From Lepidodermella squamata (taxonomy: Eukaryota > Animalia > Gastrotricha): DNA of 64,000 nucleotides. A model generated the notes under the pieces. It searched no databases. It had not been told where the DNA came from and saw only the letters and a program-made list of their open reading frames with translations. Position numbers and translations under genes: made by a program. Numbering within the stretch: position 1 is the first letter of the stretch; every line of letters begins with the position of its first letter. Below are positions 1,071 to 30,600 of this stretch, in pieces. The stretch lies in NCBI GenBank assembly GCA_047495785.1, contig JBLDXI010000024.1:1860001-1924000 (forward strand). The letters are read 5' to 3'.

Positions 1071-1507
1071 TTTGCGTGAAGTGCATACGTGACGAAGTTC
1101 TTCGTGCACCTAATTAGCGGCTCTGGGTATTGTCATCATGTCATGATACAATGGCGCGTCTGTTAAAAAAAACTCGGAATCGGCGGCGAAAGTGTATGTC
1201 TGGATAATTAGTAGGAAAAGTAGAAAAAAATTAACGCGAGCGCCGACAGCTTATTACAGATCCCTTATCTTTTGATGATAATTATAGTCAATGCAAAAAA
1301 TGAATTCGCTTCCAATTATAAGCAACTAGTCTAGAAAAGTTCAAAGATGGCGCAGACGCCTCCCTCACTTTAACCAACAATAAAGCATGTAGTGGAGTGA
1401 GTGCCGTAACGACTTGCCTGGAATAGAAACATGCGCTTCATGCTTTTTGTGAGCTGAAAAAACTGGCGTTCAGTTCTGTCTTTTGATCATCAAGGCAGCA
1501 GACAGCA
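1071..1507. repeat. Cluster-specific non-coding module, copy 1 (upstream of TH)
   Basis: 1325-1507 matches the reverse complement of 6249-6432 (~85-90% by eye) and, more loosely, 6806-6918. 1071-1163 matches 6585-6662. Confidence 0.9.
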
Positions 1508-2094
1508 CGTAGCGGTGATATTAGAAAATACTAGAAGTTGTCGTTTCCATTGTCTGTGCTTCGAATGCGCATTTTTGTATATCATCATCAACTTCAGGCG
1601 TGGTACAGTGGAACCATCCGAAATGACTTCTAATTATAATTTTATTGAAGGCTTATTTTATTTGAACCTATGCAAAGGAGTCCATCAATATGAATAAGGA
1701 AATTCTCTAATTAAAGTTGTTGTTGCGGGAAATAAACCAGTGTTAGGCTGTGAGAAACTTTGAGGCCGATTCTTTGATCAAACTCCAAGCGTATTCTATG
1801 TCCTGTTCGGTGGTTTTCGCCGCACAAATCGCTGAGTAGTTCGGCAGATTTGCAACATCAGCCGGCGTAGGGCGAGGCGAACGGCGAACGGAATAACCTA
1901 TTTCATTAACGTAACTGCGCCCCCCCCTCCTCCATGGGAACTTGAGATTCCAATGATTTCCTCACACCTTGATCGCTATATAATCATGCATCGTGCCCCT
2001 ATAGAATGAACCGTATATTTTATTAAAAAATGAATCAGTCCTGGAGTTTCAGCGATGTTAGAATATCATCATGCACTATGCGACATATATACAC

Positions 2095-3883
2095 TTAATG
2101 TGGCAAGTTGTCCTCTTTCTGCCGATTTTTACAGCCAATTTTCAGTTGAATAAGCGGGCGCCCAGGAGAGAACCGTTCGGCCGCTGACGTAACATCTGTC
2201 AAACCGACGCCTGTTTCCGGTAGGAAAAGCAGGCAAAACAAGCATTCAAGAGCAGCAACGGCAGCAAAAGGCAGGAAGGAATACTGGTGGATTGTGATCT
2301 GCATGGCGGGGAAAATGAAGCTGCTGATGATGTTGCAAGACCAACTGGCGAACATTGACACGCTCATCCCCATTGGTCGAGCGTTTTGATCGAATAACTC
2401 AGCTGCGATGAAGCAAGGTATCGGGCCGGGTCCAGACGCAAAAAACAGGTGAAACAGAGCGAAACCCAAAATGCTCGCTTGGAAAACCTGGAAAATTGAT
2501 TGATAAAAAATATTTGAAATGGATGAGAAAAGCTTACGTTATAGCTCAGGACGATGACCAGCAAAATTTGAGCCAGGGAAGTGCCGAGCAGTCCGATGAT
2601 CATCAAAGGACGCCGTCCAACTCGATCGATGATTATCGCATTGATGACATTTCCGATGAGATTTGCGACTGATACGCCGAAGTTCGCGAGTCCAGCCCTG
2701 TCAGAAGGTAAACCAGCGGAGTAGAGCACGTTGGCTGCATAGAAGAAAACCGGGGCTAGACCGGTCAGTTGAGCGCATATAAGCATGTTCACGACGATAA
2801 TTAGAGGCCACCATAGTGAGCGATTTTTGAATATGGCTTTGACTGAAACTAATTCGACCTTCGCCTCAGCTGCTGAAATTTCTTTCAATTCGACCAACTC
2901 AGCTTCGACTTCTTTCGCCGACCTTCCGCGAAGCTTTTTCAACGCTGACAAATCAGCTGTTAATACTTCATCTTATTGCAACAAGTGAGATCTTCTACCT
3001 TCTATAGCTTGGTCCTCCTTGCCCTGGTCAATTAAAGCTCTAGGACTTTCGACGACAAGAAACAAGGCAGCTCCATCCACTAGATATATGCCAAGTTCGA
3101 ATACTTGTAAATAAATAAAATTAATATGTGGCTAAAACACTAATTATTTGTAAAATTTACGAAATAAATATTGCCACGTTGACTCTTTGCCTAGCACAAA
3201 ACTGAGACCCAGAATGTTAGAAACGAGAAGGCCGAGGCTGATTCCAATGCCGATGAAACTGCCGAGTATACCTCTCAGTCTGCCAGGTGCATGCTCTATA
3301 ATTATCGAAGGCGCGATCACCAGAGTTAAGCCAGCTTGAAACCCTAACACTGTCCTTCCAATGTACAGTGGAATGTGGCTCTCAGTCCAGGGTGTCACAA
3401 ACAAGATCACAGCGCCAGCGCACCCAATAGCAGATCCCAAAATTAAAGAATTCCTCCTTAGAAATTGAATAATTGTTAAACGTTGTCGTGCAATTATTTT
3501 CTAAATTATTCTCACTTTCCAAATTTGCTTGAAATTTTGACTGGAATCCATGTTGATCCGATGATGCCGCCAATTAGGTACAAAGCGACTATAGCAGACC
3601 AGTTCGAATTCAGTTCAGCGCTTGACAAAATTTGGCCAGTTCTCGCAAATGACTGGTTGACGTAGTTATTCATAACTTCAAACGGGGCATTTATCACGCC
3701 TATTATGCAAGATCATTTAAAAAATTAGCCCTGAAACGATTCATCAAAAATATAGTTACCGAGGTTGTAACCGAATAGGAACGAAGAGCCAAGAACGATC
3801 GAAACATTGCAGTAGATCAGATAGAAAGTCCAGCCTCCCGCTTGCTTCTCCTCTGAAACAGCTGATTCACCGGTCTTGCTCAT
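2095..3883 (-). CDS. SLC2A/GLUT-family MFS transporter (multi-exon) with divergent substrate site
   Basis: Motifs GSSFLFGYNLG|VINAP, EHAPGRLRG, VESPR, QLTG..VFFY, DRVGRRPL, GPGPIP, AELFDQNARP and LPET. ATG 3883, stop 2095. Confidence 0.9.
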
Positions 3884-4219
3884 GTTTATCAACTATTCTC
3901 CACTTGCTTATTGTTGAAAAACGTTTTGCGGTAAAAAGGAGTGGGACTATTATGAGGAAATAATATTTTATAATTTTTTGAATGAACGATGTAAATTCGT
4001 CGTCAAATAACTTTTCCAATTAAAATTTTGATTAAAACGCGCTCACATGATTACGGCGAGGAGGCGTGCCGGGGTAGACTGCTCACGTTTTAATAATCTA
4101 AAATAAGATCATACCTTTTCATACCTTAAGCACTCATTGTTCATAGTACTTCGTCCTCGAAGAACATAACACGTTAGCTTCAGTAACCGGTTTTTTCACT
4201 TGAAGAGCTATCACTAATA

Positions 4220-6028
4220 ATGGACGCTGACGAATTTCGCCTGCGGGGCAAGGAGATGATCGATTTCGCAGCTGATTACCTGGAAAACATCAGCGAGAGG
4301 TTAAATATTAAATATTATTAAATTGATCAATTAAGTAATTCAAATGAACAATTAAAGACCAGTTTTCCCAACCGACCTGAAGCCTGGATTTCTGACTCCG
4401 CAGTTACCATCGGAAGCGCCACAGGAACCGGATAGTTTCGAAGCTGTGATGGATGATATAAATCGAGTCATACTACCTGGAGTGACTCATTGGCATTCTC
4501 CGAAGTAGGTTCAATTGTTCCTCTCAATTAAACTAACCAAAGCTTCCTTTGACAAGGTTTTTCGCCTATTTTCAAACAGCAAACTCCTACCCGGCGATTA
4601 TGGCTGACATTCTGTCAGATGCAATTGGATGCATAGGATTTTCATGGGCCTCTTCGCCTAGCTGCACTGAGGTTTGCAATTCAAGTTCTTAAAACTTGAC
4701 ATAATTGAATTACATTTCTCTAATTTAAATTAGCTAGAGACGGTTATGATGGACTGGTTGGCGAAAATGTTGCAACTCCCGGAGCATTTCTTGTTCAGCT
4801 CTGGCCAAAAAGGTGGTGGCATAATTCACGGAACGGCAAGTGAAGCGACATTCACAGCACTTTTAGCCGCCCGCAGTAGAGCAATAGCTCAACAGAAAGA
4901 ACTTAATCCCAATTCAACAGCGGGCAGCGTCCTCGATAAATTGGTCGCTTTCTGCTCTGACCAGGCTCACTCCAGTGTTGAACGAGCTGGTTTGATGGGC
5001 TGTATCCAACATTTCGTGAAAGTCCCGAGTGATGACGAAGAATCCATGCGAGGTGACCGTCTGAAACAAGCGATTGAAACTGCAATAGCTCGGGGTCTGG
5101 TTCCTTTTTACGTTGTAGCAACACTTGGAACTACAAATACCTGTGCTTTTGACAATTTGTTGGAAATCGGCAAAGTTGTCGCAGAATACAATGAGAAGAG
5201 CGAAACGCCGATTTGGCTGCATGTTGATGCCGCTTATGCTGGTAGTGCGTTCTGCTGTCCGGAATATCGGCATTATTTGAGCGGCGTCGAATTTGCCGAC
5301 TCTTTCAACTTCAACCCTCACAAATGGATGCTGGTTAACTTCGACTGCTCTGCCATGTGGTTTAAAGATGCCTCTCAAGTGGTCAGTTGAGAATTCTCGA
5401 AACTTTTTTATTGCTGAAATTGTTGCTTATAAAGGTGGATGCGTTCAACGTCGACCCTCTGTACTTGAAGCACCAGTTTCAAGGGCAACAGCAAGTTCCG
5501 GACTATCGACATTGGCAAATTCCTCTAGGACGTAGATTCAGAGCGCTGAAGCTCTTCTTTGTCCTTCGATTGTTCGGAGTTCGAGGAATTCAGGTTTTTC
5601 ATCTTAACGCATTTACTTTTGTATACCTACTTCTGCTGCATATAGGATTATATCAGAAAGCAGATTGGACTAGCTCATTCATTCGAAAATAAGCTGAAAT
5701 CTGACAAACGATTTGAGATAACGGCAGAGGTCACGATGGGACTGGTTTGCTTCCGATTGATCGAAGTTAGCGATGGTGACGTCAATGGGCCTTCCGAAGC
5801 TCTTTACAAGGCAATTGCGAGCGATGGCCGAATTCACTTGGTTCCGACGAAAGTAAAGTAAGAGCATCTTTTTGCAAAATAAGGTAATCAAATAAAAAAT
5901 GCTATGATTTCAGGGAAAAATTCGTGCTGCGACTGGCGATTTGTGCGGCGAAAACCACCGAACAGGACATAGAATACGCTTGGAGTGTAATTAAAGAATT
6001 GGCCTCAAAGGTTCTGACATCCCAATAA
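4220..6028 (+). CDS. DDC: Aromatic L-amino acid (DOPA) decarboxylase, 7 exons, intact
   Basis: [44 protein letters not shown] lysine motif NPHKW, DPLYLKH and [15 protein letters not shown] (DDC-type, unlike the HDC/TDC ..PLSRRFR). The exons splice in frame. Confidence 0.95.
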
Positions 6029-6248
6029 CGCGGGTTTAAATCCCACAAAAACACTATTATTTTGAGAAAATTTCCTTATTAATGTTGACTGATTCTTAAG
6101 CATTACTTCAAGTAAAATTAAACTCGAATATGATCAAAATGAAAAGACATTTTCCACAGGATCACGCCTGAAATTGATGATGATACAAAAGTGCGCGTTC
6201 GAAGCACAGACAATTGACACGACAACCGCCAGTCTTATCTATTACCCC

Positions 6249-6505
6249 TGCTGTCTGCTGCCATGATGAGCAAAAGACAGAACTGAACGTCAGTTTTTCC
6301 ACTCACAAAAAGCATGAAGCGCATGTTTCTATTCCTGGCAAGTCGTTACGGCACTAACTCTGATACGTGCCTCATTGTTGGTTAAAGTGAGGGAGGCCCA
6401 TATGCGCCATCTTTGAACCTTTCTAGACTAGTAGGTGCCGTCAACACACGAATTCATTTTTTTCTATGGTGACTAATTAGCAAGACATTTACCTTTGCCG
6501 CCGGT
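6249..6505. repeat. Cluster-specific non-coding module, copy 2 (inverted, just 3' of DDC)
   Basis: Reverse complement of the 1325-1507 block, extending into the CGGCGGC..TGTC..TAATTAG..AGAAAAAAATGAA motif. Confidence 0.9.
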
Positions 6506-6576: not shown

Positions 6577-7010
6577 CTGCAATTATGCGTGGGAAGTGCA
6601 TAGTTCCTCGTGCAACTAATTAGTAGATTTAGAAATATTCATCATACAATGGCGCGTCTGTCTGGGAACCGCGCTTGAACATATTTTAGCTCAATTTCGT
6701 GTGGATACTCGCCTGGTGTCTTGATCTAGCATATGTCTTGCTAATTAGTCACCATAGAAAAAAATGAATCTGCGTGGTGACGGCAAACCAAACCAACGAT
6801 AACCAACTAGTCTAGCCAAGTTCAAGTTGGAGCAGTGGCCTCCCTCACTTTAACCAAGAATATGGCATAACCAAGAGTGGGTGCCGTAGCGAATTGCCCG
6901 GATTGGAAACAAGGCAGCGGCGGGGAAGGTTGCTATTGTCTTCTTAGTTAGGTAAGTAGAAAAAAATGAACACGCGAGTAGCGATGGCATACGAAAGATG
7001 GCTTATCAAC
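6577..7010. repeat. Cluster-specific non-coding module, copy 3 (upstream of the GNAT)
   Basis: Contains matches to 1071-1163 (TCGTGCA.CTAATTAG, ATACAATGGCGCGTCTGT), 1325-1430 (ACTAGTCTAG, GCCTCCCTCACTTTAACCAA, GTGCCGTA) and 1205-1240 (AAGTAGAAAAAA..AAC.CGCGAG). Confidence 0.85.
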
Positions 7011-7092: not shown

Positions 7093-7722
7093 ATGGCGAA
7101 TCACCAAGTTGCTGTCAAACTGCTCACCCGCGATCGCCTCGATGAGGCTGTTGATGTGTTGGCGAACTCATTTATGCAGAATCACCTCCCCACAATCCAC
7201 CTCAAACAATTTACTCGCGACAAGTTCCCGATATTCGTCCGAGACTTTATTATCGAGACTTGCATCGATCAACATGTTAGCCTTTTCATTGAAGACTCTG
7301 CTGGTAAAATGCTTGGCGTTGCTGTCGGCGAGATATGGCATATCGAGGAGAATCCTTCTCTGCCTGATCAGGATGAAGAGATGTTCATCCTGATGGGAGA
7401 GCTCCAAAAAATGTTGCCGCAAGAGATGGTTGCAGAATCTTGCAATGGAACAATTTTGCATCTCAGCATGGTCGCGACTCGAGTTGGTGAACATGGCCGT
7501 GGGGTCGCGACTCTGCTGATAAAATCAATGGTCGAATTCGCGCTGATGAATGAATTCAAATACATCTTCGGCGATTGTACATCGGTTGAGACGCAGCACA
7601 TATTTTTGGATAAATTAGGCTTCACCAACGCTGGGGAAATCATGTACGATACATTCAGCGACAAGCTCAAGGGCTGCCCTGGCAAAATTGTTTTAGCGGT
7701 CAAGAAATTAGTCCAAGATTAG
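7093..7722 (+). CDS. GNAT acetyltransferase resembling insect arylalkylamine/dopamine N-acyltransferases (intronless)
   Basis: 209 aa. Features include the N-terminal 'LDEAVDVLANSF' helix, 'DSAGKMLGVAV', the AcCoA motif HGRGVATLLI and 'DCTS..TQHIF.KLGF', as in the iAANAT family. Candidate TTTAAG + TCAGTCTC promoter at 7023-7059. Confidence 0.7.
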   Translation: MANHQVAVKLLTRDRLDEAVDVLANSFMQNHLPTIHLKQFTRDKFPIFVRDFIIETCIDQHVSLFIEDSAGKMLGVAVGEIWHIEENPSLPDQDEEMFILMGELQKMLPQEMVAESCNGTILHLSMVATRVGEHGRGVATLLIKSMVEFALMNEFKYIFGDCTSVETQHIFLDKLGFTNAGEIMYDTFSDKLKGCPGKIVLAVKKLVQD

Positions 7723-15606: not shown

Positions 15607-18600
15607 ATGAGTGCATCTCGCGACAAGAATTTGATCGCGAGCGGTCAAATACCATATCTGCCCCCTATCAATGACAAATTGTCAGTCGAACCAGATCGAT
15701 GGAAGAAAAGCAAGCTGCTAAGTTATCGGAGAGAGAATGAGCAAAGGAAAGTTCTTGATCATATCATCATGCAGCAAGCGAAGAAGCGGCGTACAGAGCT
15801 TGTTGAATTAATGGAAACAGAACCTCCGCCGATTCCACCTCCTGAATATCCAGCAGAAATGATGTCACGTGATCGGAAAATCAAGATGAATTATATTTTT
15901 CTGAAGACATGCGTGGAGTCAACCCAGATGCCACCTCTCCAGGAGTATACAATTGACAACATTGAATCTCGCGTGCCAGAACGCCTTAAGAAGTTACCTG
16001 GCTATCAGAGCCTCATTGAAGAGGTAGCAACCGAAGTTCGGTCAGATTTTGACAAGAGTATGAAAAAGGCATTGGGTAAGTGATATTGTTATCTCGGTTA
16101 ACGTGTAATTTAAAACTGCGCTTACAGTTCAAAAGACTTTGATCACACCTAACATCAAAGGGTTGAATGCTGGAGAGATCATCATACCTCTGCCAGATGA
16201 ACCAAGGTTTGCTATTCATCGTCATTTTATTTATTATGAAACATCTCTTCTTTCAGTGGGCTTGATTATTCAAAACCTTGGCATCATACTTATGTGGAGA
16301 GCAAGAAAAGTTTGCAGGCTAATTTGCAGACCGTGCACCCTTTAATGATGCAAGTTTTGCGGTTATGCCAGCAACATCTTGGAAACACTCTCTTGGTTGA
16401 CATTTCTACTTATCGGTAAGTGCATCTACTGAAATCTTAAGATCCCCAGCAATGCTCCTCTATTATGTAGGAAAAAAGGCGTGATCGATTTTGAGTCTTT
16501 GAGGCGTGATATTACAGTTACAATTGAAAAAGCTGAGGAAAAGTTGCTGCAGTCGTGGTATCCAAATGTTGTCAGCATATTTTCCGATCCAAAATGCAAA
16601 ATCAAGCTGCGAGGCGAGGGATCGAAAATATTTTTCAACTGTTTGACCGCCCTAATTTCCAATCAGGTAATCACTTATTCATCCAATTTATTTATTAAAT
16701 CCAACATTTTCATCCTCTTTAGCTAAGAGACTTTTTACATCGGACCGTCGATGCTGTCGTCGATCTGTTTCGTATTGATAACAAGTCCAAGCTTCCTCTC
16801 CTTAAAACTGAATTGATACTGGAAGACAACAAAATGCAGTTTTATCCCACTTACAAGGATCTTGAAGAATTGGTTCTATTTTTTGTCGACGCTATTCTGA
16901 AATCCATGCAAAAAGTTCCGACTGTCAGTTCCTTTCTTGCCGGTGGTAATGTCGACTACATTCGTGTTACCATCGCCGAGGACATCGTGAAAGCTGCCAA
17001 AACCGAATTGAAGGCTTCTTGCAAGCGTAATTTTGAGGAGCCAGCTGCATACCTTCAGTGGTATGGTAAGTATTTTCGGGAGATACAGAAATTTGTGATG
17101 AAATGAATTGAATGTAGTGGAAAATTATGACTACCTGGTTAATGGGCAAGCCCAATCAGAAATCGAGAAATTCATCAGCGAAGGCAGGGAGTTCGAAGAA
17201 TACACTAAGGTAATATTTTTTCTATCAATTTGATTGAATTTGAATTCCCAATATTGCTCTTCAGCTTATCGAAAGCTATCGTGATCTGGCGTACAAAATC
17301 ATGATCCTCCCTCCCGCTGAATACTACGATTTGATTCGCTTGGACTGCGAGGACCTAAAGCGTGGGCTAGTCGCCGCTGCCAGAAACCTCGCCGGTCAGC
17401 TCATCGAAAAGGTTGTGAATGATCATCGGAACGAGAACACTAGTATTTGCGATGAATTCACCACGATCAAAGCCCGAGCATTAAAAGTGCCCGAAACCTC
17501 GGAAGAGCTCGTCGACATGGTCAATTTTGTTGAAACAGCTCGATCTATGGGCATGCTCAAGCTCAACGAACGCATTAAATTGTGCGTTGAACGCCTTCAG
17601 TACCTTCTCGAAGCGTACGGTTTCACAAAAGCCGATATAGATCTCAACAGTGATGTTTTGCTTTGGCCTAAGAAGATTAGCCCAGTTTTTGATGACAACG
17701 ACTTGGTAAACTGAAAATTTTAAATTACGACCTCGTTTAAAGCCTTTATTTCATTTTAGCTAACTGAAAAGTCGAAAGAGCTCGGCGAGAAAGTGTTGAC
17801 GGAAAAACGTGAAAAAGTAATGATTGAACTCGCGAAACTCAAGACCCGCGCTGATGAATTCAACGACTACGGCGAGTTGGACATGATGGCTCAATACGTT
17901 CAAGACGTTCGAGCTGTTCAGAAGCGCCTCGAGGTCGCTCAAGAACAGATCGCTTGGGTCAACAAAGTTTGTTAAATAACGTCGATTTTCTTGAAACTAC
18001 ATACATTTTCTTCTCTCGTTGATAGGAGGAAGCTTTGTACAAATTCGCCATCAGCCAATACCCAGAAGTAGAAGAAATTTCGACGGCGGTCGATCCTTTC
18101 TACAAACTTTTCTCGGTGGTTTTCAAATGGCAACGTGCCGAGAAGAAGTGGATTGATGGCAGCTTTACTGACCTCAATGCCGAGGTTATTGAAGCCGAAG
18201 TCGACGAATACTGGCGCGAGTTATACAAAGTTCAGAAAATTTTCAATCAAAAGTAATTTTGGATTTTATTTTTTTTCTCATATGAATTTTTTCGGAAAAT
18301 GGATCTAGATATAAAGAAAAGCTTCGGCTAATGAAAGAGGAGCGTTTGAAACATTTAAAGAAAAAACTTCAGACTCATGATCCCCTGAGACGCATGAAAA
18401 CATTGAATCGTCTCGTTATTGACATGGAGTAAATGAAATTGCTAAATTCACGACGCGGCTGTAATTATCACTACATTATTGTCATTTTTCGCTTCTTGTA
18501 TATTCGAGCTTTGCTATCCATGAAAAATTGCTGAAAATAATTTTATAATTGATGTGTTTCAGGATCAAAAGGATGCAAATGGAAGTTGATGAGCGAAATC

Positions 18601-21600
18601 GCGAGAAAGCGAAGAAACGCCGGCACAAGGAGGCCGAGGGGTCTGAAATGACCCCGGAGGAAGAGGCTGAGCTTGCCGATGAAGTTGTCCACCCTCCAGT
18701 TGCTCTCGGCATTGTCACAACTGTTCAGGAGCAGATCGGCGAGTTTAAGACTCACGTTCCAACTATCAGCATTTTGTGTAACCCTGGCCTGCGGCAACGC
18801 CACTGGGACAAAATGTCCGAAGTAGCCGGGTTCAACTTGACGCCAGATTCTGGAACTACCCTACGAAAAGTTCTTAAACTTCCGATTCAGGAATTTATGG
18901 ATCAATTCGAGGCAATATCAGGCGCTGCGACAAAGGAACACTCGCTTGAAAAGGCGATGATCAAGATGAGAAACGATTGGGAGCCGATGGTTTTCAACTT
19001 GACGCCTTACCGCGATTCAGGCATTTCAATCTTATCGTCAGTCGACGAAATTCAAGCTCAACTCGACGATCAAATTATTCGAACGCAAACTATGCGCGGC
19101 TCGCCGTTTATCAAGCCGTTTGAAAACGAAATCAGGATATGGGAAGAGCAGCTTCTACGAATTCAGGACACGATCGATGAATGGTTGAAAGTACAGGCGC
19201 AATGGCTGTACTTGGAGCCTATCTTCGCTTCACCTGATATCATGCAACAAATGCCGGAAGAGGGCCGTCTATTCACACAGGTTGATCGGTCATTCCGTGA
19301 AACTATGAAGCACACGGCTAAAAATACTAGCGTTCTGGTCGCTACAAGCCTGTCAGGTATGAAATTTGAGTATTTTCCCTCACACAAATTTTGCGAATAG
19401 CTTACAAATTTTGAAATGACATTTTCATTATTAGCCAAAGGAGTGTTCGCAGGTAAACTTTTGCACGATGGCACGATATCATTTTCTGGAGTCTAATTAA
19501 TTTTATACAAAGAAAAATAACTGTGGCCCACAATTTCGGAAAATCACTAACGCATGATTTTTAAGGCGGAATTTTCACTCTTTACATTTTTTTCATCCAG
19601 GATTGTTGGAAAAGCTGGTTGATAGCAATGTGTTATTGGACCGAATTAACAAAGGTCTAAATGCTTATCTCGAGAAGAAACGTCTGTTTTTCCCGCGTTT
19701 CTTCTTCCTGTCCAACGACGAAATGCTGGAAATTCTATCCGAGACAAAAGACCCAACTCGAGTTCAGCCTCATTTGAAGAAGTGTTTCGAGGGTATTGCC
19801 AAGTTGGAATTCGACTCGATTCAAGACATCAGGGCCATGTTTTCATCTGAAAATGAGAAAATCACCCTGTCGGAGGTTATCTCCACCGCTGAAGCTCGCG
19901 GCGCCGTTGAGAAGTGGCTGATTCACGTCGAACGAGTCATGATTCTGTCGATGAAAGACGTAGTCCTAGCGTCATACAACGCCTATGCGAATGAAGAGCG
20001 TCGAAATTGGGTTGTTTCATGGCCTGGCCAGGTCGTGCTGTGCGTCAGCCAGGCTTACTGGACCACCGAAGTTCACGAAGCAATCCGGTCGAGCAAAACC
20101 GGCCTTCGCGATTACCACAAGCGTTTAGGCGCTCAACTCATGGAAACTGTCGAGTTGGTTCGAGGCAAGTTGACTAAGCAGCAGCGAACCACGCTAGGAG
20201 CTCTTGTCGTCATTGATGTCCACGCTAAGGATGTCATTAATGAATGCGTGCAACAGGGCGTTGTTTCCGAGAACGATTTCATGTGGCTGTCTCAGTTGCG
20301 TTACTACTTTGAAGACGGGTTGATGATGGTTCGCTGCACTAATGCAACGATTGGCTACGCCTATGAATACCTCGGCAACTCGCCACGTTTAGTCATCACC
20401 CCGCTGACGGATCGTTGCTACCGAACTCTGATCGGCGCCTTCCACCTTAATCTAAACGGCGCCCCTGAAGGCCCGGCCGGGACTGGTAAAACCGAGACGA
20501 CAAAGGATTTAGCAAAAGCGATCGCAGTTCAATGCGTCGTGTTCAACTGTTCGGACGGTCTTGATTACATAGCCATGGGCAAATTTTTCAAGGGTCTTGC
20601 CGCCTGCGGTGCCTGGGCTTGCTTCGACGAGTTCAACCGCATCGAGCTCGAGGTGTTGAGTGTCATTGCTCAGCAGATTCTGTGCATCATTCGAGCTGTC
20701 CAGGCTCACGTTGATTCTTTCATTTTCGAAGGAACGGAACTTCGGCTGAACCCTATGTGCTATGTCGTAAGTTCTAGCCACCTTAATTTTAAAATTTAAT
20801 TTTTTTGAATTTTCTTGAAATTGAAATTTTTTGAAATTTTGAAATATTGAATTCTAAAATTATTTAACATTTTCTCAATTTAAAGTTTTTGTTTAAAATG
20901 TTAAAATTGAAAAAATTGAAAAATAATTTTATCGTAAGTTTACTCTTTTTTTTTATTTTAAAGTTTTTAATATGAAAATCTTAATCCTTAATCTTAATTT
21001 TTTAAATTGTGAACAAGTTTAAAATCTCATTTTTTTCAGTGCATCACCATGAACCCGGGTTACGCTGGGCGCAGTGAGCTTCCAGACAACTTGAAGGTCC
21101 TCTTCCGACCCGTGGCTATGATGGTCCCTGACTACGCGATGATTGCTGAAATTTCGCTGTACTCGTACGGTTTTCTCGACGCTCGAGATTTGTCCGTCAA
21201 AATCGTCACGACCTACAAACTGTGCTCCGAACAGCTGTCCAGCCAGTTCCACTACGACTACGGCATGCGAGCCGTCAAATCCGTACTGTTAGCCGCTGGC
21301 AACCTCAAATTGAAGTACCCGAACGAGAAGGAGCAGATTCTACTTCTCCGCTCGATTATCGACGTCAATTTACCGAAATTTTTAGCCCACGATATACCGC
21401 TATTCGAGGGTATCATCTCCGATTTGTTCCCAGGTGTTTCGCTGCCGAAACCAGACTACAGAGTTTTCCTCGAATCTCTGGACGCGATTTGCCAGAAGAA
21501 AAACCTGCAAAATGTCGACTTCTTCCAACAGAAGGTTATCCAGACCTACGAAATGATGATCGTCCGTCACGGTTTCATGCTTGTCGGCGAGCCATTTGGT

Positions 21601-24600
21601 GGGAAGACCAAAGTCCTCGAAGCTCTGGCCGAAACTATGACGACGCTAGAAGGCAACGGCGTGACTGAGTATGAAAAGGTCATGTTTCGAACAATCAATC
21701 CGAAAGCGATTACCATGGGCCAGTTGTACGGTCAGTTCGACCCGGTTTCTCACGAATGGTCTGACGGTATCGTGGCGAACACTTTCCGTGAGTTCGCGTT
21801 TATGGACACGCCTGACCGGAAATGGGTCGTCTTCGATGGCCCTATCGACGCCGTTTGGATCGAAAGTATGAACACTGTGCTGGACGATAACAAAAAACTG
21901 TGCCTCGTTTCGGGTGAAATCATCCAAATGTCGGCGGTTATGAGTTTGATTTTCGAGACAATGGACTTGTCTCAAGCTTCGCCCGCCACTGTCAGCCGTT
22001 GCGGTATGATTTACATGGAGCCGACCACGCTGGGCTGGCGGCCGATTTTCAAGAGCTGGCTAAATGCTAACCACCCTACAATACAGCAAAACAACGAAAT
22101 TCTCGAGGCGCTCTTCGAGTGGATTGTCGATCCAACGCTTGATTTTGTTCGGAAAAATTGCAAAACCTACACACCAACTGGACAGGCTAATATGGTCCGA
22201 TCTCTGATGTACCTCATCGAAATGTTGCTGCACGAGGGCGCGATTAAGGCGGAAACTGAGGAGAATAAACACTTCCCAGTTTGGTTGATGGCTGCGTTCC
22301 TTTTCGCGATTGTTTGGTCGCTCGGCGGTGTTATCGATGGCGAAAGTCGGCCGAAATTTGACCAATTTTTCCGCGAATTAATCAGCGGCAAAAACAACGA
22401 TCTGCCTACGCCGAAAGCTCTCGGCAAGCTGGACATGCTGTTCCCGTCTGAGCAGACCGTCTTTGACTATTACTACGAGGTACTGAAATCCACTGAAAAA
22501 TTCCTTAATTAAATTATAGAAATTTTGTTTTTAACTTGAAATATTTATGTGATAATTTGTTTAAACACAGCAAAGAGATCCTATCATTGTAAGTACTTGA
22601 TGGTGTCATTTAAGGATTATGAGAAAATTTCCCTCGAGTTTCTAGGATAATTACAGCGTGTCCCATGAGTAACGCAATCAAATAAAATACACGGAAAAGG
22701 GTTCAGAAACTATAAAATGAGTGGCAAAGTCTCATCTCATGGCCAGAAAATTGTAGAAAAATTCAAAAATTCGCGAGAATAGATAGCAAGTATGTTACTT
22801 GTTAATAGAATTGAAAAAGTACGGAGAAATCTGGTCCAACCTGGAAAAATACCGAAAATTACCGAACCAGTTACCATCGGGATTTTCCAGGTTTTCTTCT
22901 GTAAATTTTCAATTTTTTCGATAAAATCACGGATAAATGATGGGAGATTCTCTTGGTAGGTTTAATTTGAAAAAATTACTTGAATTTCCAACAACAATTT
23001 TTCAAATTAAAAAATAGCTGCGCAATTTTTGGGACGCGCTGTAATGTTACCTTTAAAATTGAAAATTGCCTTTGGGATACATTTTGAAAATATAGAAAAA
23101 ATGTTGTCATAGTATAGCCATTGTAAATGTGATTTGTGTGTCATTTTGAGTTATCCGAAGCATTTTTATTGATTTATTAATCGTGATTTTTTTCGACAAT
23201 TTATAGCAAAAAGCCCGTGGTGCTTGGATGCATTGGAACGAAATGATCCGTCATCAGAAAGTTGATACTGGGCGAAAAATCCAGGAAATTCTAGTGCCGA
23301 CAATGGACACGGCCCGTTTTATGTACCTGTTGGATCTATGCATCCACCACGACCGTCCTATCCTGTTCTGCGGCCCTACTGGTACCGGCAAATCGGTATA
23401 CGTTCAAGAGCTGCTTATGAACAGCCTGCCACGTGACCAGTACATGCCGGCTTTCCTTGCGTTCTCGGCGCAAACGTCGGCGAATCAAACGCAAATGATT
23501 ATCATGTCGAAGCTGGACAAGCGGCGTAAAGGCTACTTTGGCCCTCCGATCGGCAAGAAGGCCATCATTTTCATCGATGACGTCAACATGCCGGCGAAGG
23601 AAGTCTACGGCGCCCAGCCGCCTATCGAGCTGCTGAGAATGTATTTCGATCATCAGTATTGGTTTGATCTGAAGGATATGAGCAAGTTAATCCTTCAGGT
23701 AGGTCCTCTTTAAAATTCGAGAGATTTAATTTTTTTTATTCGTATCTCAGGACATCCTTCTTGTCGCTGCTATGGGTCCACCGGGTGGAAGTCGCAACTT
23801 TTTAACGCCGCGTTTCCTCCGTCACTTCAACGTTATTTCAACCCCACCGTTCAACGATGAAACAATGAACAGAATTTTCTCAACTCTTTACAGCACTTAT
23901 TTGAGGGTAAGGATGGCGAATAATTTTCCGATAGTTATCGTCCACGTCGCTGAAAATCAATTGGTATTTTAATAATTAAACTATTTAATGAACAATAGCA
24001 ACCTGGAAAAGACGGAACGGTTTGTAGAATATATTTTTTAATTTGCGCCATTTTATAAATTTTCCGCTAAATTCAGCATAGCTAATAATTTGATTAATAT
24101 CAGCGGTTAATTTAAGTTTATATTACTATTTATCGCTTTGTAATTTATCAGCGCATCGCTGAAACTAGATCCCATGTTGACAAGCTGCAGGTAAATAACG
24201 AAGAAAACGAAAATCACAGACATTATTTTCGTCGTCACAAAATTTTCAGAGCATAAATACTTTTATTTAAATAATTTTTCCTTCCACGATTTCATTTTTC
24301 GCGATTTAAAATTTCGTTATTTCTAATTTTTGCAGAAGGGAGAATTTTCGCCGGAATATTTTACCGTTGGAAATCTCATCATTCAAAGCACGATGGACGT
24401 TTACAAACAAGCCATGTTGAAGCTGCTGCCCACCCCAGCTAAATCGCATTACGTTTTCAACCTGCGAGATTTCAGCCGCGTCGTTCTTGGATGTTGCCTG
24501 CTTCGCAAAGAGCAAGTCAGCGATAAGAAAATGCTCGTTAGGTAAATATTTTGTATGACATTTAGCAAGTAAAACGTGGGCTTGGCAACATTGTTGGCAT

Positions 24601-27600
24601 CTTGAAATTTTGATGTCGCTTTCAAGATGAACGAACGAGGAGTCGAATGATACCAAAACGAGGTTGATAGTCATCAGGGTTGCTGAGAAAATGTGCTTCA
24701 AAGTTAACGGGTGAAAATTGTTAATTTCGAAAAAATGCACGCTTAAAAATCAAGTTTTTATTGCATCAATTAATAACTTGGCGCGCAATAAACTTTCTTA
24801 TGCGCATTCGAGATTTTTGGGGCAATCTGAGGTGAGGAATCTTGCTAAATTTTCAAAAAAATTGATGGAATCAAGCTAGTACTTCCACATCGACCTAAGT
24901 CAATAATCATGTTCGGCGACACTTTGGGGTCTCCCGACTTTTAGGATGGATGGGAGCCTCCTGGAGGTCTGAATTTTTACAAATTTAAAATCCTCGAGAA
25001 AAACTTGGTAAGAACACCTAGGAATCGAAAAATCGTCCCTCTTCAAGCCAACACTCTTTGTGCCATTCACTGAAAAATACAGAAAATGCGCCAAACCCCA
25101 CTTTTCACTTGCTATAACGGCCATATTCAATTTTCTCGACTGATCGTTACTTTTCCCCCGTCAGATTGTGGGTGCACGAAGCTATGCGTGTCTTCTACGA
25201 TCGTTTAACCGATAATAAGGACAAGCAATGGCTGTTTGGACAGCTTCGAGAGTGCATCACCAACAATTTCAAAGAATCTTTCGACGGCCTGTTCGAACAT
25301 TTATGCCAGCCCGGCAAGAAGCTGAGCCCGGAAGACCTGCAGGGCCTCATGTTCGGCGACTACATGAACCCGGACCTTGACGCTGAAGATCGCATGTACG
25401 AAGAGGTGCGTTCTATCGATGACATGTACAAAGTGGCTGAGCATGGCCTGGATGAGTATAACAACACTCATAAGGCTAGAATGAGCCTCGTCGTTTTCCG
25501 CTACGTTCTCGAACATTTGTCGCGAATTTGCCGAATTCTGCGCATACCAGGCGGTAACGGGTTGTTGGTCGGTGTCGGCGGCTCGGGGCGCCAGTCGCTT
25601 ACCCGGCTAGCCGCTTCAATGGCTGGCTGCGAACTCGTTCAGCCGGAAATTTCGAAAAATTACGGCAAAAATGAGTGGCGGGAAGATTTGAAGAAATTGA
25701 TGAAATCAGCCGGTGTCGGCGGCAAGAAAACCACCTTCCTAATGACTGATAGCCAGATTAAGGAGGAGTCTTTCCTGCAGGACGTTGATTCACTGCTGAA
25801 TACCGGCGAAATTCCGAATCTATTCGCGTCAGACGAAAAAGCCGAGTTGATGGAAGCTGTCCGCCCGGCAGCCCAGGCGGCTAACACCGCTGCTGGCGGG
25901 GATAAAAACGCCGAACTTGGCCCATTAGCGCTGTTCGCGTTCTTCATCAACAGATGCCGTGAAAACCTACATATCATCATCGCGTTCAGCCCTATCGGTG
26001 ACGCGTTCCGAACCCGACTGCGCCAATTCCCGTCTCTAATCAACTGCTGTACGATCGATTGGTTCCAGGAGTGGCCGGAGGATGCGTTGGAGCGAGTCGC
26101 GAATCGTTATCTCGAGGCGGTCGAGATGAAAGATGAGTGGAAAAAGGAGACCGTACAGCTGTGCAAAATGTTCGACATTTCAGCGCGTAAGTTGTCGGAG
26201 AAATTCTACGCGACACTCGGCCGGCGCAACTACGTCACGCCAACGTCGTACCTTGAACTGCTCGGTTCTTTCAAGCGGCTGCTTTCCCAGAAGCAGGACG
26301 AGACAATGAAGGCGAAGAAGCGGTACGTTGTCGGTTTACAGAAACTCGCCTTCGCCTCGGAGCAGGTCTCGGCTATGCAGCGGCAGTTGGAAGACCTGAA
26401 GCCGGAGCTGGTCAAATCAGCCGAGGACACGACCCGCTTCATGACAATTATCGACAAGGAATCGGCCGAGGCTGAAATTACGAGCAGACGCGTTAAGGCG
26501 GATGAGGAGATTGCGAACGAGCAGGCGGCCTCGTCGCAAAAGCTGAAAGATGAGTGCGAGGCTGAACTCGCCGAGGCTATGCCGGCGCTTGAAGAGGCCC
26601 TGGCCGCTTTAGACACCCTAAAACCAGCCGATATCACAATCGTTAAATCCATGAAAAACCCGCCGTCTGGGGTTAAATTAGTCATGGCTGCTGTTTGCGT
26701 TATGAAAGACATTAAGCCAGACCGAGTCAACGACCCGGCGACCGGGCAGAAAGTTCTCGACTACTGGGGCCCATCGAAACGGTTGCTAGGTGACATGAAC
26801 TTCCTTGGGATGCTGAAAGAATACGACAAGGATAACATGCCTAACCACGTTGTCACGAAAATTCGGACGGAATACATTACCAACCCGGAGTTCGACCCAG
26901 TCCGTGTCGCGAAGGCGTCGTCAGCCGCTGAGGGTCTATGCAAATGGATCATGGCCATGGAGAAGTACGATCGAATCGCGAAGGTCGTTGCGCCAAAGCG
27001 AGAGCGTCTAATGAAGGCCGAGGCTGAGTTCGCGCAGACTATGGCGAATTTGAACGCGAAACGAGCCGAGCTGCGCGCCGTTGAAATGCGCCTCGCCGAC
27101 CTGCGCCGCCAGCTCGACGAAACCACGCTGAAGAAGCAGAACCTTGAATTTGAGGTGGATTTGTGCGGGAAGAAGCTAGTTCGAGCCGAGAAGCTGATCG
27201 GCGGCCTCGGCGGCGAGAAAGACCGTTGGGAGCGAACTTCAGTCGAGTTGCAAGTTGTCTACGACAATTTAGCGGGTGATGTGCTGATTTCAGCGGCTGT
27301 TATCGCCTACCTCGGCCCATTCACCGCGCCGTACCGCGACGAGGTGATAACGGAGTGGGTGCGCCACGTGTCTGTTAAAGGCATTCCTTGCAATAAGGAA
27401 TTCTCGCTCACCAAAGTTTTAGGCGAGCCGATTAAAATTCAGGCGTGGAACATTGCCGGCCTGCCTAGGGACGCGTTTTCTATCGATAACGCCGTCATCG
27501 TAGCCAACGCGCGTCGCTGGCCGTTGATGATCGACCCTCAGGGCCAGGCGAATAAGTGGATCAAAAATTTTGAGCGTGAGAACAGCCTGTCTGTCATCAA

Positions 27601-30600
27601 GCTCACAGACGCTGATTACATGCGAACCCTCGAAAATTGCATCACATTCGGAACACCACTTTTGCTGGAAAATGTTGGCGAGGAGCTTGACCCAGCCTTA
27701 GAGCCGATTTTGCTGAAACAGACCTTCAAACAAGCTGGTGTTGACATGATCCGATTGGGTGATAACTTGATTGAATACAGTAAAGATTTCAGGTTTTACA
27801 TCACCACAAAACTGCGAAATCCGCACTATTTGCCCGAAGTTGCGACCAAAGTTTCACTGCTCAACTTCATGATCACGCCGGAAGGTCTTGAAGATCAGTT
27901 GCTCGGCATTGTGGTCGCGAAGGAACGGCCCGATCTTGAGGAGGAGCGGCAGGCTTTGATTGTTCAATCCGCATCGAATCGGCGTCAGTTGAAAGAAATC
28001 GAGGACAAAATTCTTCAAACTTTGTCGTCATCTGAGGGCAACATTTTGGAGGACGAGTCTGCTATTCAAATTCTAGACTCGTCCAAAATTCTGTCCGATG
28101 AAATTCAAAAGAAGCAAAAGGTCGCTGAGGAGACTGAGAAAAAGGTCGAGACGAGTCGTGTCGGTTATCGACCCATAGCCAAGCACTCGGCCAATTTGTT
28201 CTTCTCTCTCACGGATTTGCCGAACATTGACCCGATGTACCAGTACTCGTTGACGTGGTTCGTCAATCTCTACATCAATTCGATTCAGGATAGTAACAAA
28301 TCGAAGATTCTTGACAAGCGGCTTCGCTATCTTCAGGAGCACTTCACGTACAGTCTCTACCAAAATGTGTGCCGGTCGCTGTTCGAAAAGGACAAACTAC
28401 TCTACTCATTCGTCTTGTGCTCCAAGATCATGAGGTACTTTCAAAATTTAAAAAAACTTGAAAATGTTAAATGTTGATCAAATTTAAATTTTTAAAATTT
28501 GTAGAAAATACTTTCAAAATTGTTTTAAGACATTGCAATTTGCACTTGTTGCCCTGGTTGCGAAATTTGCCCTTGAATTTTATTAATAATTTATGAATTT
28601 TTAATTAATTAATCAATTTAATTTAATTTTTTGATGAACTATTAATTATTAATTAATTATTTTTATCAATTAACAGTGGTAAAGGCGAGCTTCTAGAAGA
28701 TCAGCTCATGTTTTTCCTAACTGGCGGTGTTGGCCTCGAGAACAAACTGCCAAACCCGGACAAATCTTGGATCACCGATAAAACATGGGACGAACTGTGC
28801 CGTCTCGACGATTTGGCTGCCTTCAAAGGCATTCGGTAGGTCTTACTAATTTTTCAATATAATTTCAAATAATTTTCTTTGAAATTTTAGTGAGAGCTTT
28901 ACTCGAAATATTGGAGCTTGGAAAGATTTTTACGAAACAAAGGAGCCGCAAAACGCTGAAATTCCCGAGCCGTGGCAAAGCAAGTTGGACGATTTTGCTC
29001 GACTGCTGGTCATTCGCGTCATTCGACCCGACCGCTGTGTTTCCGCCGTTACGAAATTCGTCACCGAACGGCTGGGCAAAAAATTCGTCGAACCGCCGCC
29101 GTTCGATCTCGCTAAATCGTTCGCTGATTCTAACGCATGTGCTCCACTCATTTTCATACTGTCACCCGGCGCCGACCCAACAATGGCGCTGCTGAAATTC
29201 GCCGACGATCGCGGGTTTGGCGGCAAGAAATTTCAGTCCATCTCGCTGGGTCAAGGCCAGGGTCCGATTGCCGCGAAAATGATCGCGCAAGGCCGAACTG
29301 ACGGTCAGTGGGTGCTGTTGCAAAATTGCCATTTAGCTGTCAGTTGGATGACGGCTCTCGAGAAACTGTGCGAGGAACTGAGCCCGGAAAGCACCGACCC
29401 GAAATTCCGGCTATGGCTGACCAGCTACCCGTCGGAGAGATTCCCTGTCACTGTCCTGCAAAACGGGGTTAAAATGACGAACGAACCGCCGACGGGACTG
29501 AGGCAGAATCTACTTCAGTCCTATTTGAATGACCCCATTTCGGACGAGACATTTTTCTCAGGTTGCCCGGGTAAGGAGGGCAATTTCGAGAAATTGCTCT
29601 TCGGCCTCTGCTTCTTCCACGCTTTGGTTCAAGAGCGGCGAAAGTTCGGCCCGCTCGGCTGGAACATCCCGTACGGCTTCAACGAGTCGGACCTGCGAAT
29701 CTCCGTTCGCCAACTGCAAATGTTCATCAACGAGTACGAGGATGTGCCGTTCCAGTCGATCACGTACCTGACTGGCGAGTGCAACTACGGCGGTCGTGTT
29801 ACTGACGACTGGGACAGGCGGACGCTTCTGACGATTCTGGCGGATTTCTGCAATGACAGCCTGATCAGCGACCCGAAGTACAAGTTCTCGCCGTCTGGCA
29901 CGTATTTCGCCCCGCCGCAGGGCAGCTACGAGTCTTATTTGGACTTTATCAAAGACCTGCCGCAGTCGCAACAGCCGGAGATTTTCGGAATGCATGAAAA
30001 CGTCGATATTAGCAAAGATTTACAGGTAAAAAATTATTATCAACAAAAAATTCTTTTATTTGGGAATTTCGCTTAAATCGCCGAATTTTTGCTGTTAACC
30101 AGCTTTGCGAAAGGATTACCTTGTGATCGGAATCGGTCTTGCCAAAACGGAAAATTCGTAACTAGAAAAATAATAAATTGATAAATTTAATTTCAGCTCC
30201 GTAATTAGGTGGGGTGATTTTGGCCAAACAATGTTTTTTGAGGATTAAAAATTAGTCGTAATTCAGAAATCGATGATTTTATATACAAAGGTGTGGAAGG
30301 TTATTCTAAATTTATCTTAAATTATTTGTGATTTTGGTGAAGTAACGCAAGCAAAGCAAATACACGGAAGAAGGATCAGAAACTCTAAAATGAGAGGGAA
30401 AGTCTTATATAATGGCCCGAAAATGTCTTAAGTGAATAGGATTAAGAAAAATCCCAAGAAATTCGATCCAACCAGGTAAAAACCGAAAATTACCGAAGCA
30501 GTTACCATCGGGGTTTTCAGGGTATTCTCTGGTGAATTTGTAATTTCTTAGGTGAAAATATTGGATAAAGGATGGAAGATTCCCATAGTGGGCTTAACAA

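Follow-up and report, generated by a model that had tools for sequence, protein, structure and literature searches.

GLUT9 (SLC2A9) is a member of the sugar-porter family that carries a non-sugar cargo, urate, and its urate-binding residues are Y327, N333 and W336, plus E364 and C427 (PMC11169512). In flea beetles, a lineage-specific expansion of sugar porters includes glucosinolate transporters, whose cargo consists of plant glycosides and not of free sugars (PMC8113468). Here we describe a gene of the gastrotrich Lepidodermella squamata that is predicted to encode a sugar porter of the animal GLUT (SLC2A-like) branch, within the major facilitator superfamily. It lies on the minus strand at positions 2095-3883 of a stretch of 64,000 nucleotides (GenBank assembly GCA_047495785.1, contig JBLDXI010000024.1, positions 1,860,001 to 1,924,000), hereafter called the window. 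On balance, we favour the view that its product is a functional facilitative carrier from a lineage-specific GLUT-like clade, with a rebuilt, larger and less polar cavity that would be unsuited to free hexose. Proteins of the GLUT family are usually annotated by default as glucose carriers, and this one would exemplify the drift of a binding site within a transport machinery that is kept intact.

An intact gene of the animal GLUT branch

The gene consists of six exons on the minus strand, from an ATG at 3883-3881 to a TAA at 2097-2095. The first in-frame ATG is preceded by an upstream stop, the five introns (60, 59, 57, 42 and 50 bp) all have GT..AG ends, and the frame remains open over 1,521 coding bases without frameshift or stop, for a product of 506 amino acids. 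Read from the sequence, retention of intron 4 leads to a stop codon. The features of the gene are the following:

3760..3883, minus strand: exon 1, with the start codon, the N-terminus and transmembrane helix 1 (TM1), which contains FGYNLG; Asn at the GLUT1 N29 site and Leu at the T30 site
3516..3699, minus strand: exon 2, with the VINAP motif, loop 1 and TM2
3650-3658, minus strand: N-Q-S sequon in loop 1 of exon 2
3161..3456, minus strand: exon 3, with the GKR loop and TM3 to TM5; Gly172 (Q161 site), codon 3249-3251
2999..3103, minus strand: exon 4, with TM6 and VESPR (PESPR motif)
2538..2956, minus strand: exon 5, with the intracellular helices and TM7 to TM9; Ala298, Gln299, Ala304 and Asn335
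2610-2618, minus strand: GRR in exon 5
2095..2487, minus strand: exon 6, with TM10 to TM12, the C-terminal tail and the stop; Ala393, GPGPIP, Cys401, Ser424, Trp425, Asn428 and PETG
2019..2024, minus strand: AATAAA, candidate polyadenylation signal ~70 nt past the stop codon, found by reading the sequence

Intron 4 has a candidate second acceptor 12 nt downstream (2944 vs 2956), with which the intron would be 54 bp and the product 502 amino acids long. This acceptor is a better match to the sizes of the other introns and would drop four residues that have no counterpart in the relatives of the protein or in GLUT1. The predicted product is 506 or 502 amino acids long, and its pocket residues are the same either way.

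Database searches were made exon by exon, and the joined protein was used for the frame check, for tblastn against the fetched loci, for MAFFT alignment and for the tree. Exons 3, 5 and 6 each passed the Pfam model Sugar_tr (PF00083) singly, with 57.9, 72.4 and 77.0 bits for a cut-off of 22.3 (E-values of 1.1e-15, 4.4e-20 and 1.8e-21). Their top matches among the solved structures in PDB were mammalian GLUT1/3/4/5/7/9 (E 1e-11 to 1e-15), GlcP, XylE and STP10 being weaker (E 1e-5 to 1e-8). Both results agree with the GLUT-family membership proposed in an earlier note on this DNA, which had been made by eye. In HMMER alignments, 97 residues of exon 3 paired with GLUT1 93-189 without a gap and exon 5 with GLUT1 226-356, while exon 6 was aligned to GLUT4 and GLUT3. 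The joined model is collinear with vertebrate GLUT1 and arthropod Glut1 in MAFFT alignments, at 30-31% identity and with indels of at most 5 amino acids, and its hydropathy peaks fall at the expected sites of 12 transmembrane helices, TM11 being the weakest.

The loop motifs are GKR at 102, VESPR at 219, GRR at 350 and PETG at 466, plus IIEHAPGRLRG and AELFDQNAR. Those of the conformational cycle follow one another in the order GKR after TM2, E..R after TM4, VESPR after TM6, GRR after TM8, AELF..R after TM10 and PETG after TM12; their variants are conservative and the alternating-access set is complete. The earlier description of the structural motifs as intact is exact for the second GRR and for GPGPIP, but the first GRR reads GKR, PESPR reads VESPR and PETKG reads PETG.

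An Asp at the TM1 coupling site is the mark of proton coupling, as in XylE and the plant STPs. The N29 site of the window protein is Asn40, and the HMIT-like P0011 has Asp in the same table. From the presence of Asn, not Asp, at this site we infer a facilitative uniporter; the protein would most likely be passive and carry its substrate down the gradient.

A rewired binding pocket

The residue map of the pocket comes from HMMER alignments that are gapless or nearly so and from two MAFFT alignments, all in agreement. With GLUT1 numbering for the reference residues, it reads as follows:

Q161: replaced by Gly172
Q282: replaced by Ala298
Q283: kept as Gln299
N288: replaced by Ala304
N317: kept as Asn335
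E380: replaced by Ala393
W388: replaced by Cys401
N411: replaced by Ser424
W412: kept as Trp425
N415: kept as Asn428
T30: replaced by Leu41
V165: replaced by Ser176

The formal alignments reproduced every residue pairing that the earlier note had made by eye. Those to human GLUT1 (HMMER) pair LHQLG with FIGIG (Q161G) and QQLSGINA with AQLTGLAP (Q282A and N288A), and those to GLUT4, GLUT3 and vertebrate GLUT1 pair SNW with ASW (N411S) and FFEVGPGPIPW with FFASGPGPIPC. Although this last pairing stands, counting E380A as a loss does not: Ala is the commonest state at the E380 site in our comparison sample (199 of 281 carriers) and also occurs in arthropod Glut1 orthologues, whereas Glu is a feature of vertebrate class I.

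This sample comprises 281 full-length sugar porters, among which arthropod Glut1 and inositol-type carriers of bacteria are over-represented. Eight positions coordinate the sugar near-universally (Q161, Q282, Q283, N288, N317, W388, N411 and N415); N288 is conserved in 270 of the 281 carriers, W388 in 265 and Q283 in 280. All eight are intact in 157 carriers, and arthropod Glut1 has the full set; no more than three survive in only 6 of the 281. The window protein is left with three (Q283, N317 and N415), and the hexose-porter set is thus incomplete. The same combination of replacements is not seen in any characterised hexose carrier sampled. The earlier claim that most glucose-contact residues have been replaced is therefore sustained, with four truly unusual substitutions, or five with N411S, and not six. 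In the alignments, it is the replacement of Q161, Q282, N288, W388 and N411 together that remains unusual. Compared with GLUT1, the cavity lining would have ~360 cubic angstroms less side chain, a figure obtained by arithmetic from textbook residue volumes and not a structural measurement.

Comparison with known carriers

GLUT9 is the top PDB match for exon 3, in which LGKESTW.YLF is near-identical. This class II urate uniporter also lacks Q161, Q282, E380 and W388, and it has Leu at the sites of T30 and I287 (its L75 and L332), as does the window protein. The pocket of the latter is, in fact, rewired as far as that of the urate carrier. However, Y327, N333, W336, E364 and C427 of GLUT9 correspond to Ala298, Ala304, Phe307, Asn335 and Ala393, and a GLUT9-type urate carrier was rejected on the absence of the urate triad. 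The GLUT9-like P0066 also falls outside the clade of the window protein in our tree. The window protein is thus no GLUT9 orthologue and probably no urate carrier, and we take GLUT9 as a precedent, not as a family assignment.

With GLUT1/3/4 and arthropod Glut1 the window protein shares all gating and salt-bridge motifs and the Asn of TM1, and like arthropod Glut1 it has Ala at the E380 site. Unlike them, it has five of the eight sugar-coordinating residues replaced. It also departs from class I GLUTs: QLS in TM7 is replaced by L-I-C, the STSIF motif is absent and the W388 site is occupied by Cys401. The lack of W388 and QLS is the signature of class II GLUTs (PMC12347752).

The flea-beetle glucosinolate transporters may serve, by analogy, as a model of how such paralogues gain secondary-metabolite cargo. 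They belong to another clade and another organism, and their substrates retain a glucose moiety.

A lineage-specific clade with variable pockets

In an exhaustive HMMER search of 1.84 billion representative proteins with exon 5, the best identity was at most 44%. The nearest relatives are exon-sized open reading frames (ORFs) on metagenome-derived eukaryotic contigs (P0002, P0003, P0270-P0272 and P0006), and the corresponding genes on loci L001-L003, L005 and L006 are 37-46% identical to the window transporter. They share with it the intron positions, an N-terminal GWT.YL.Y, a C-terminal LIQL and the rewired pocket sites of TM5, TM7 and TM8. In contrast, their replacements are other ones (e.g., N-E at 282/283 and either E or M at 317), they keep W388, and they are flanked by a lipase, an NRF-type acyltransferase and, further out, a gene for peptidylglycine alpha-hydroxylating monooxygenase (PHM), whereas the window transporter has a tyrosine hydroxylase (TH)-type gene and a DOPA/aromatic-amino-acid decarboxylase (DDC) gene as neighbours.

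In the maximum-likelihood tree, the window protein and these metagenome relatives formed one clade with a support of 99 in the Shimodaira-Hasegawa-like approximate likelihood-ratio test (SH-aLRT). P0070 was its sister (SH-aLRT 98), and the clade was nested in a group with vertebrate GLUT1 and arthropod Glut1 (SH-aLRT 90 for the group). No member of the clade is named or characterised. The clade alignment had no match in a scan of JGI metagenome contigs, and a feature search of the ESM Atlas with exon 5 retrieved generic Sugar_tr clusters only. The members of the clade have a conserved scaffold, but seven of the eight pocket positions vary between lineages: N-E at 282/283 goes with Met at 317 in one, Glu occupies both 161 and 317 in another, and W388C is found in the window protein alone. 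Most of the canonical residues are retained in the sister lineage, which comprises P0070 and its tandem neighbours on L004. This pattern looks like a diversification of specificity rather than decay, and the pocket variants of the clade would form, beside GLUT9, a natural series in which to study specificity in the sugar-porter fold.

Three sugar-porter genes make up the tandem array of the sister lineage (L004, 1200-8017), and 140 bp separate the two that lack introns; N317 is not kept in the array. One of the nearest relatives of the transporter derives from the same metagenome sample. The contigs of the closest relatives, L001, L005 and L006, were independently assembled and all end inside the same gene, at about the equivalent of exon 3, which might mean that an upstream part is repeated or duplicated in the organism from which they derive.

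Diverged copies and selection

Two sequencing runs were compared with the window. Run 1 is probably the source DNA and covers the whole stretch, and run 2, which we guess to be RNA, is coded as that of another organism. Run 1 also contains a second version of the transporter, with a divergence of ~9% in part of the gene. Within the 64-kb window there is no second transporter paralogue, and the loose-end sequence that marks a different 3' flank of the transporter in another copy is also absent from it. A loose end of run 2 at 3456 agrees, but for one mismatch, with the end of exon 2, indicating that intron 2 was removed in a ~92%-identical transcript. A close paralogue or orthologue is thus transcribed and spliced, the RNA matches being those of a diverged version and not of this copy. 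Against the ~91-92% identical version, a partial list of differences held 12 synonymous and 7 non-synonymous codons, which suggests purifying selection on the transporter. Among the differences is S424N, the diverged version retaining the canonical Asn at the N411 site.

One DNA contig departs from the window at 2413, exactly at the Cys401 (W388) codon, and from there would read F-A-I-G-P-G-P-I-A-P. It suggests a further GLUT-like paralogue in the same genome, also devoid of the Trp.

Genomic neighbourhood

The features around the transporter are the following:

starts near 974 and runs off the window start, minus strand: biopterin-dependent hydroxylase (TH-type), with tyrosine 3-monooxygenase as its best match in PDB
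1325..1832, minus strand: left arm of an inverted repeat, which contains a remnant copy of about the last 30 DDC codons, 260 bp past the transporter stop
3884..4219: 336-bp spacer from the transporter ATG at 3883 (minus strand) to the DDC ATG at 4220 (plus strand), candidate shared divergent promoter
4220..6031 (approximate), plus strand: DDC (Pfam Pyridoxal_deC, E 4e-81; PDB DDC, E 4e-82)
5936..6432, plus strand: right arm of the inverted repeat, which begins in the last DDC exon and extends into the 3' flank
7093-7722, plus strand: single-exon GNAT ORF of 209 amino acids (PDB 3QB8, E 2.9e-10)

The transporter and DDC genes stand head-to-head, with their start codons 336 bp apart, and it is plausible that the spacer acts as a shared divergent promoter. 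DDC starts with the ATG at 4220, its last exon and stop having been located by reading the sequence. Its best named matches are ~60% identical, alike for insects, spiders and mammals. DDC is found in run 2 with GT..AG splice joints, one exon piece being identical to the window. The TH-type hydroxylase, 1.1 kb from the transporter, matched tyrosine 3-monooxygenase in PDB (E 2e-33) ahead of PAH and TPH. The best match of the GNAT ORF was the polyamine acetyltransferase A654L of chlorovirus PBCV-1 (3QB8, E 2.9e-10), with insect arylalkylamine N-acetyltransferase at E 0.16, and no Pfam GNAT model reached the cut-off for these 209 amino acids. This greater proximity to a polyamine acetyltransferase makes N-acetyldopamine uncertain as an end product.

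The arms of the inverted repeat, ~510 nt long, flank the transporter-DDC pair and are 81% identical over 515 nt (E 3e-139). A third, partial copy of the repeat lies at 6793-6974, immediately upstream of the GNAT ORF. One DNA contig links 1832 to 5868 on opposite strands, which implies another copy or haplotype in which DDC continues from the left arm, in reversed orientation. It suggests that the DDC-transporter cassette underwent a small inversion, or else that a paralogous cluster has another order; either way, the two genes remain head-to-head.

Two further candidates in the surroundings of the relatives were rejected. The copper monooxygenase of L005, located 8 kb from the relative of the transporter, does not qualify as a dopamine beta-hydroxylase (DBH), as it matched PHM at E 2e-28 vs 8.5e-5 for DBH. 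Likewise, a conserved linkage between transporter and acetyltransferase was discarded, the 211-amino-acid ORF upstream of the L002 relative having no similarity to the GNAT ORF of the window. On L010 (10001-13223), a metagenome contig from a compact eukaryote, a DDC homologue and a gene for GTP cyclohydrolase I are ~2 kb apart; the latter enzyme starts the synthesis of biopterin, the cofactor of tyrosine hydroxylase.

Proposed function and alternative explanations

A 12-helix GLUT fold with its salt-bridge and loop motifs (GKR, E..R, VESPR, GRR, AELF..R and PETG) would drive a rocker-switch cycle, and Asn at the TM1 coupling site would make it that of a passive uniporter, the substrate moving down its gradient. 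The central cavity is rebuilt, with Q161, Q282, N288, W388 and N411 changed into Gly, Ala, Ala, Cys and Ser. Since it would be larger and less polar, a free hexose is an improbable substrate, and a bulkier or more hydrophobic small molecule would probably take its place. The non-glucose substrate proposed in the earlier note is indeed the most reasonable interpretation of an intact frame and intact motifs combined with the replacement of most hexose contacts. With each member of the clade having its own rewired pocket, the range of substrates may have diversified among them. As to the cargo itself, the neighbourhood of TH, transporter, DDC (336 bp off) and acetyltransferase would make a metabolite of that pathway a candidate by position only. 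A catechol is a plausible cargo on this ground; for it as for the other proposed cargoes (an N-acyl product, a glycoside or a cofactor) the single argument is the position of the gene.

Several observations speak against a functional carrier with a rebuilt pocket or against its link with the neighbouring genes. The contigs of run 2 lie on transporter exons 2, 3 and 6 and are each 8-9% diverged, which points to a paralogue or a related species, and not to the window copy, as the source of these RNA-like sequences. The tally of synonymous and non-synonymous codons is a partial sample, restricted to the listed differences, and the Asn found at the N411 site of the diverged version makes at least one pocket change recent. 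Concerning the genomic context, neither TH nor DDC was detected beside the nearest relatives out to the contig ends, the upstream side of L001, L005 and L006 being cut by the end of the contig, and no adjacent sugar porter occurred on three DDC-bearing contigs from other compact eukaryotes (labels L007-L012). Finally, substitutions of W388 impair the transport and targeting of GLUT1, according to a reference given in PMC12347752, and Cys401 could therefore be damaging.

Part of this evidence would suit a duplicate that is redundant and under relaxed selection, or a sensor without transport, in which the pocket changes are early decay and a useful cargo has been lost: W388C is unique within its own clade, S424 is a recent change and the RNA-like contigs come from the diverged version. 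We consider this very unlikely, since the 1,521 coding bases contain neither frameshift nor stop, the five introns have canonical ends, the motifs of the conformational cycle form a full set, synonymous differences exceed non-synonymous ones (12 vs 7) and the relatives in other organisms are intact genes with rewired pockets. Alternatively, the protein could be an ordinary sugar or polyol carrier, perhaps of low affinity and high capacity, that binds a hexose, a polyol or a disaccharide through Q283, N317 and N415 and through backbone or water contacts. Q283, the most conserved residue of the pocket (280/281), is indeed kept, together with N317, W412 and N415, and bona fide sugar carriers also show E380A or lack W388; GLUT9 retains weak glucose transport despite similar losses (PMC11169512). 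However, Q161, Q282 and N288 have all become Gly or Ala, although N288 is kept in 270 of 281 carriers, and the combination is unmatched among the characterised hexose carriers sampled, which makes an ordinary sugar carrier quite unlikely in our view. Should the cargo prove to be a sugar, the 'universal' contact set would be dispensable.

A further alternative, which makes the reading of the earlier note specific, is a dedicated pathway carrier that imports a precursor such as tyrosine or L-DOPA, or exports a product such as dopamine, an N-acyl-dopamine or a catechol glycoside. It would serve cells expressing TH, DDC and the acetyltransferase and would be co-regulated with DDC via the 336-bp spacer. 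The head-to-head arrangement with DDC, the TH-type hydroxylase 1.1 kb away and the inverted repeats, which flank the transporter-DDC pair and hence would make it one unit in rearrangement, are consistent with such a role, and an aromatic cargo would fit the enlarged, less polar cavity. Nevertheless, position is the sole link, the nearest relatives elsewhere lack the TH/DDC linkage out to their contig ends and the acetyltransferase is of polyamine type in likeness; we thus regard a dedicated pathway carrier as possible but unlikely. If the link with DDC and TH is functional, the transporter would be a candidate membrane route for catecholamine precursors or products outside the known SLC6 and SLC18 routes, and would illustrate how the genes of a pathway and its transporter can cluster in an animal. 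The more specific proposal of a built-in transporter of an animal cluster for a catecholamine-derived metabolite (TH, transporter, DDC and acetyltransferase), co-transcribed with DDC from a shared divergent promoter and moving a precursor or a product across the membrane, seems to us rather improbable. If true, it would represent a rare biosynthetic gene cluster of an animal that includes a dedicated carrier, and a GLUT scaffold adapted to an aromatic amine or its conjugate.

Other genes in the window

Further along the window, exons of an axonemal-type dynein heavy chain extend over ~12 kb of the plus strand (18549-30076), with the domains DHC_N2, AAA_6, AAA_8, MT stalk, AAA_9 and Dynein_heavy, and a retinoblastoma-family gene is found at 59105-61045.

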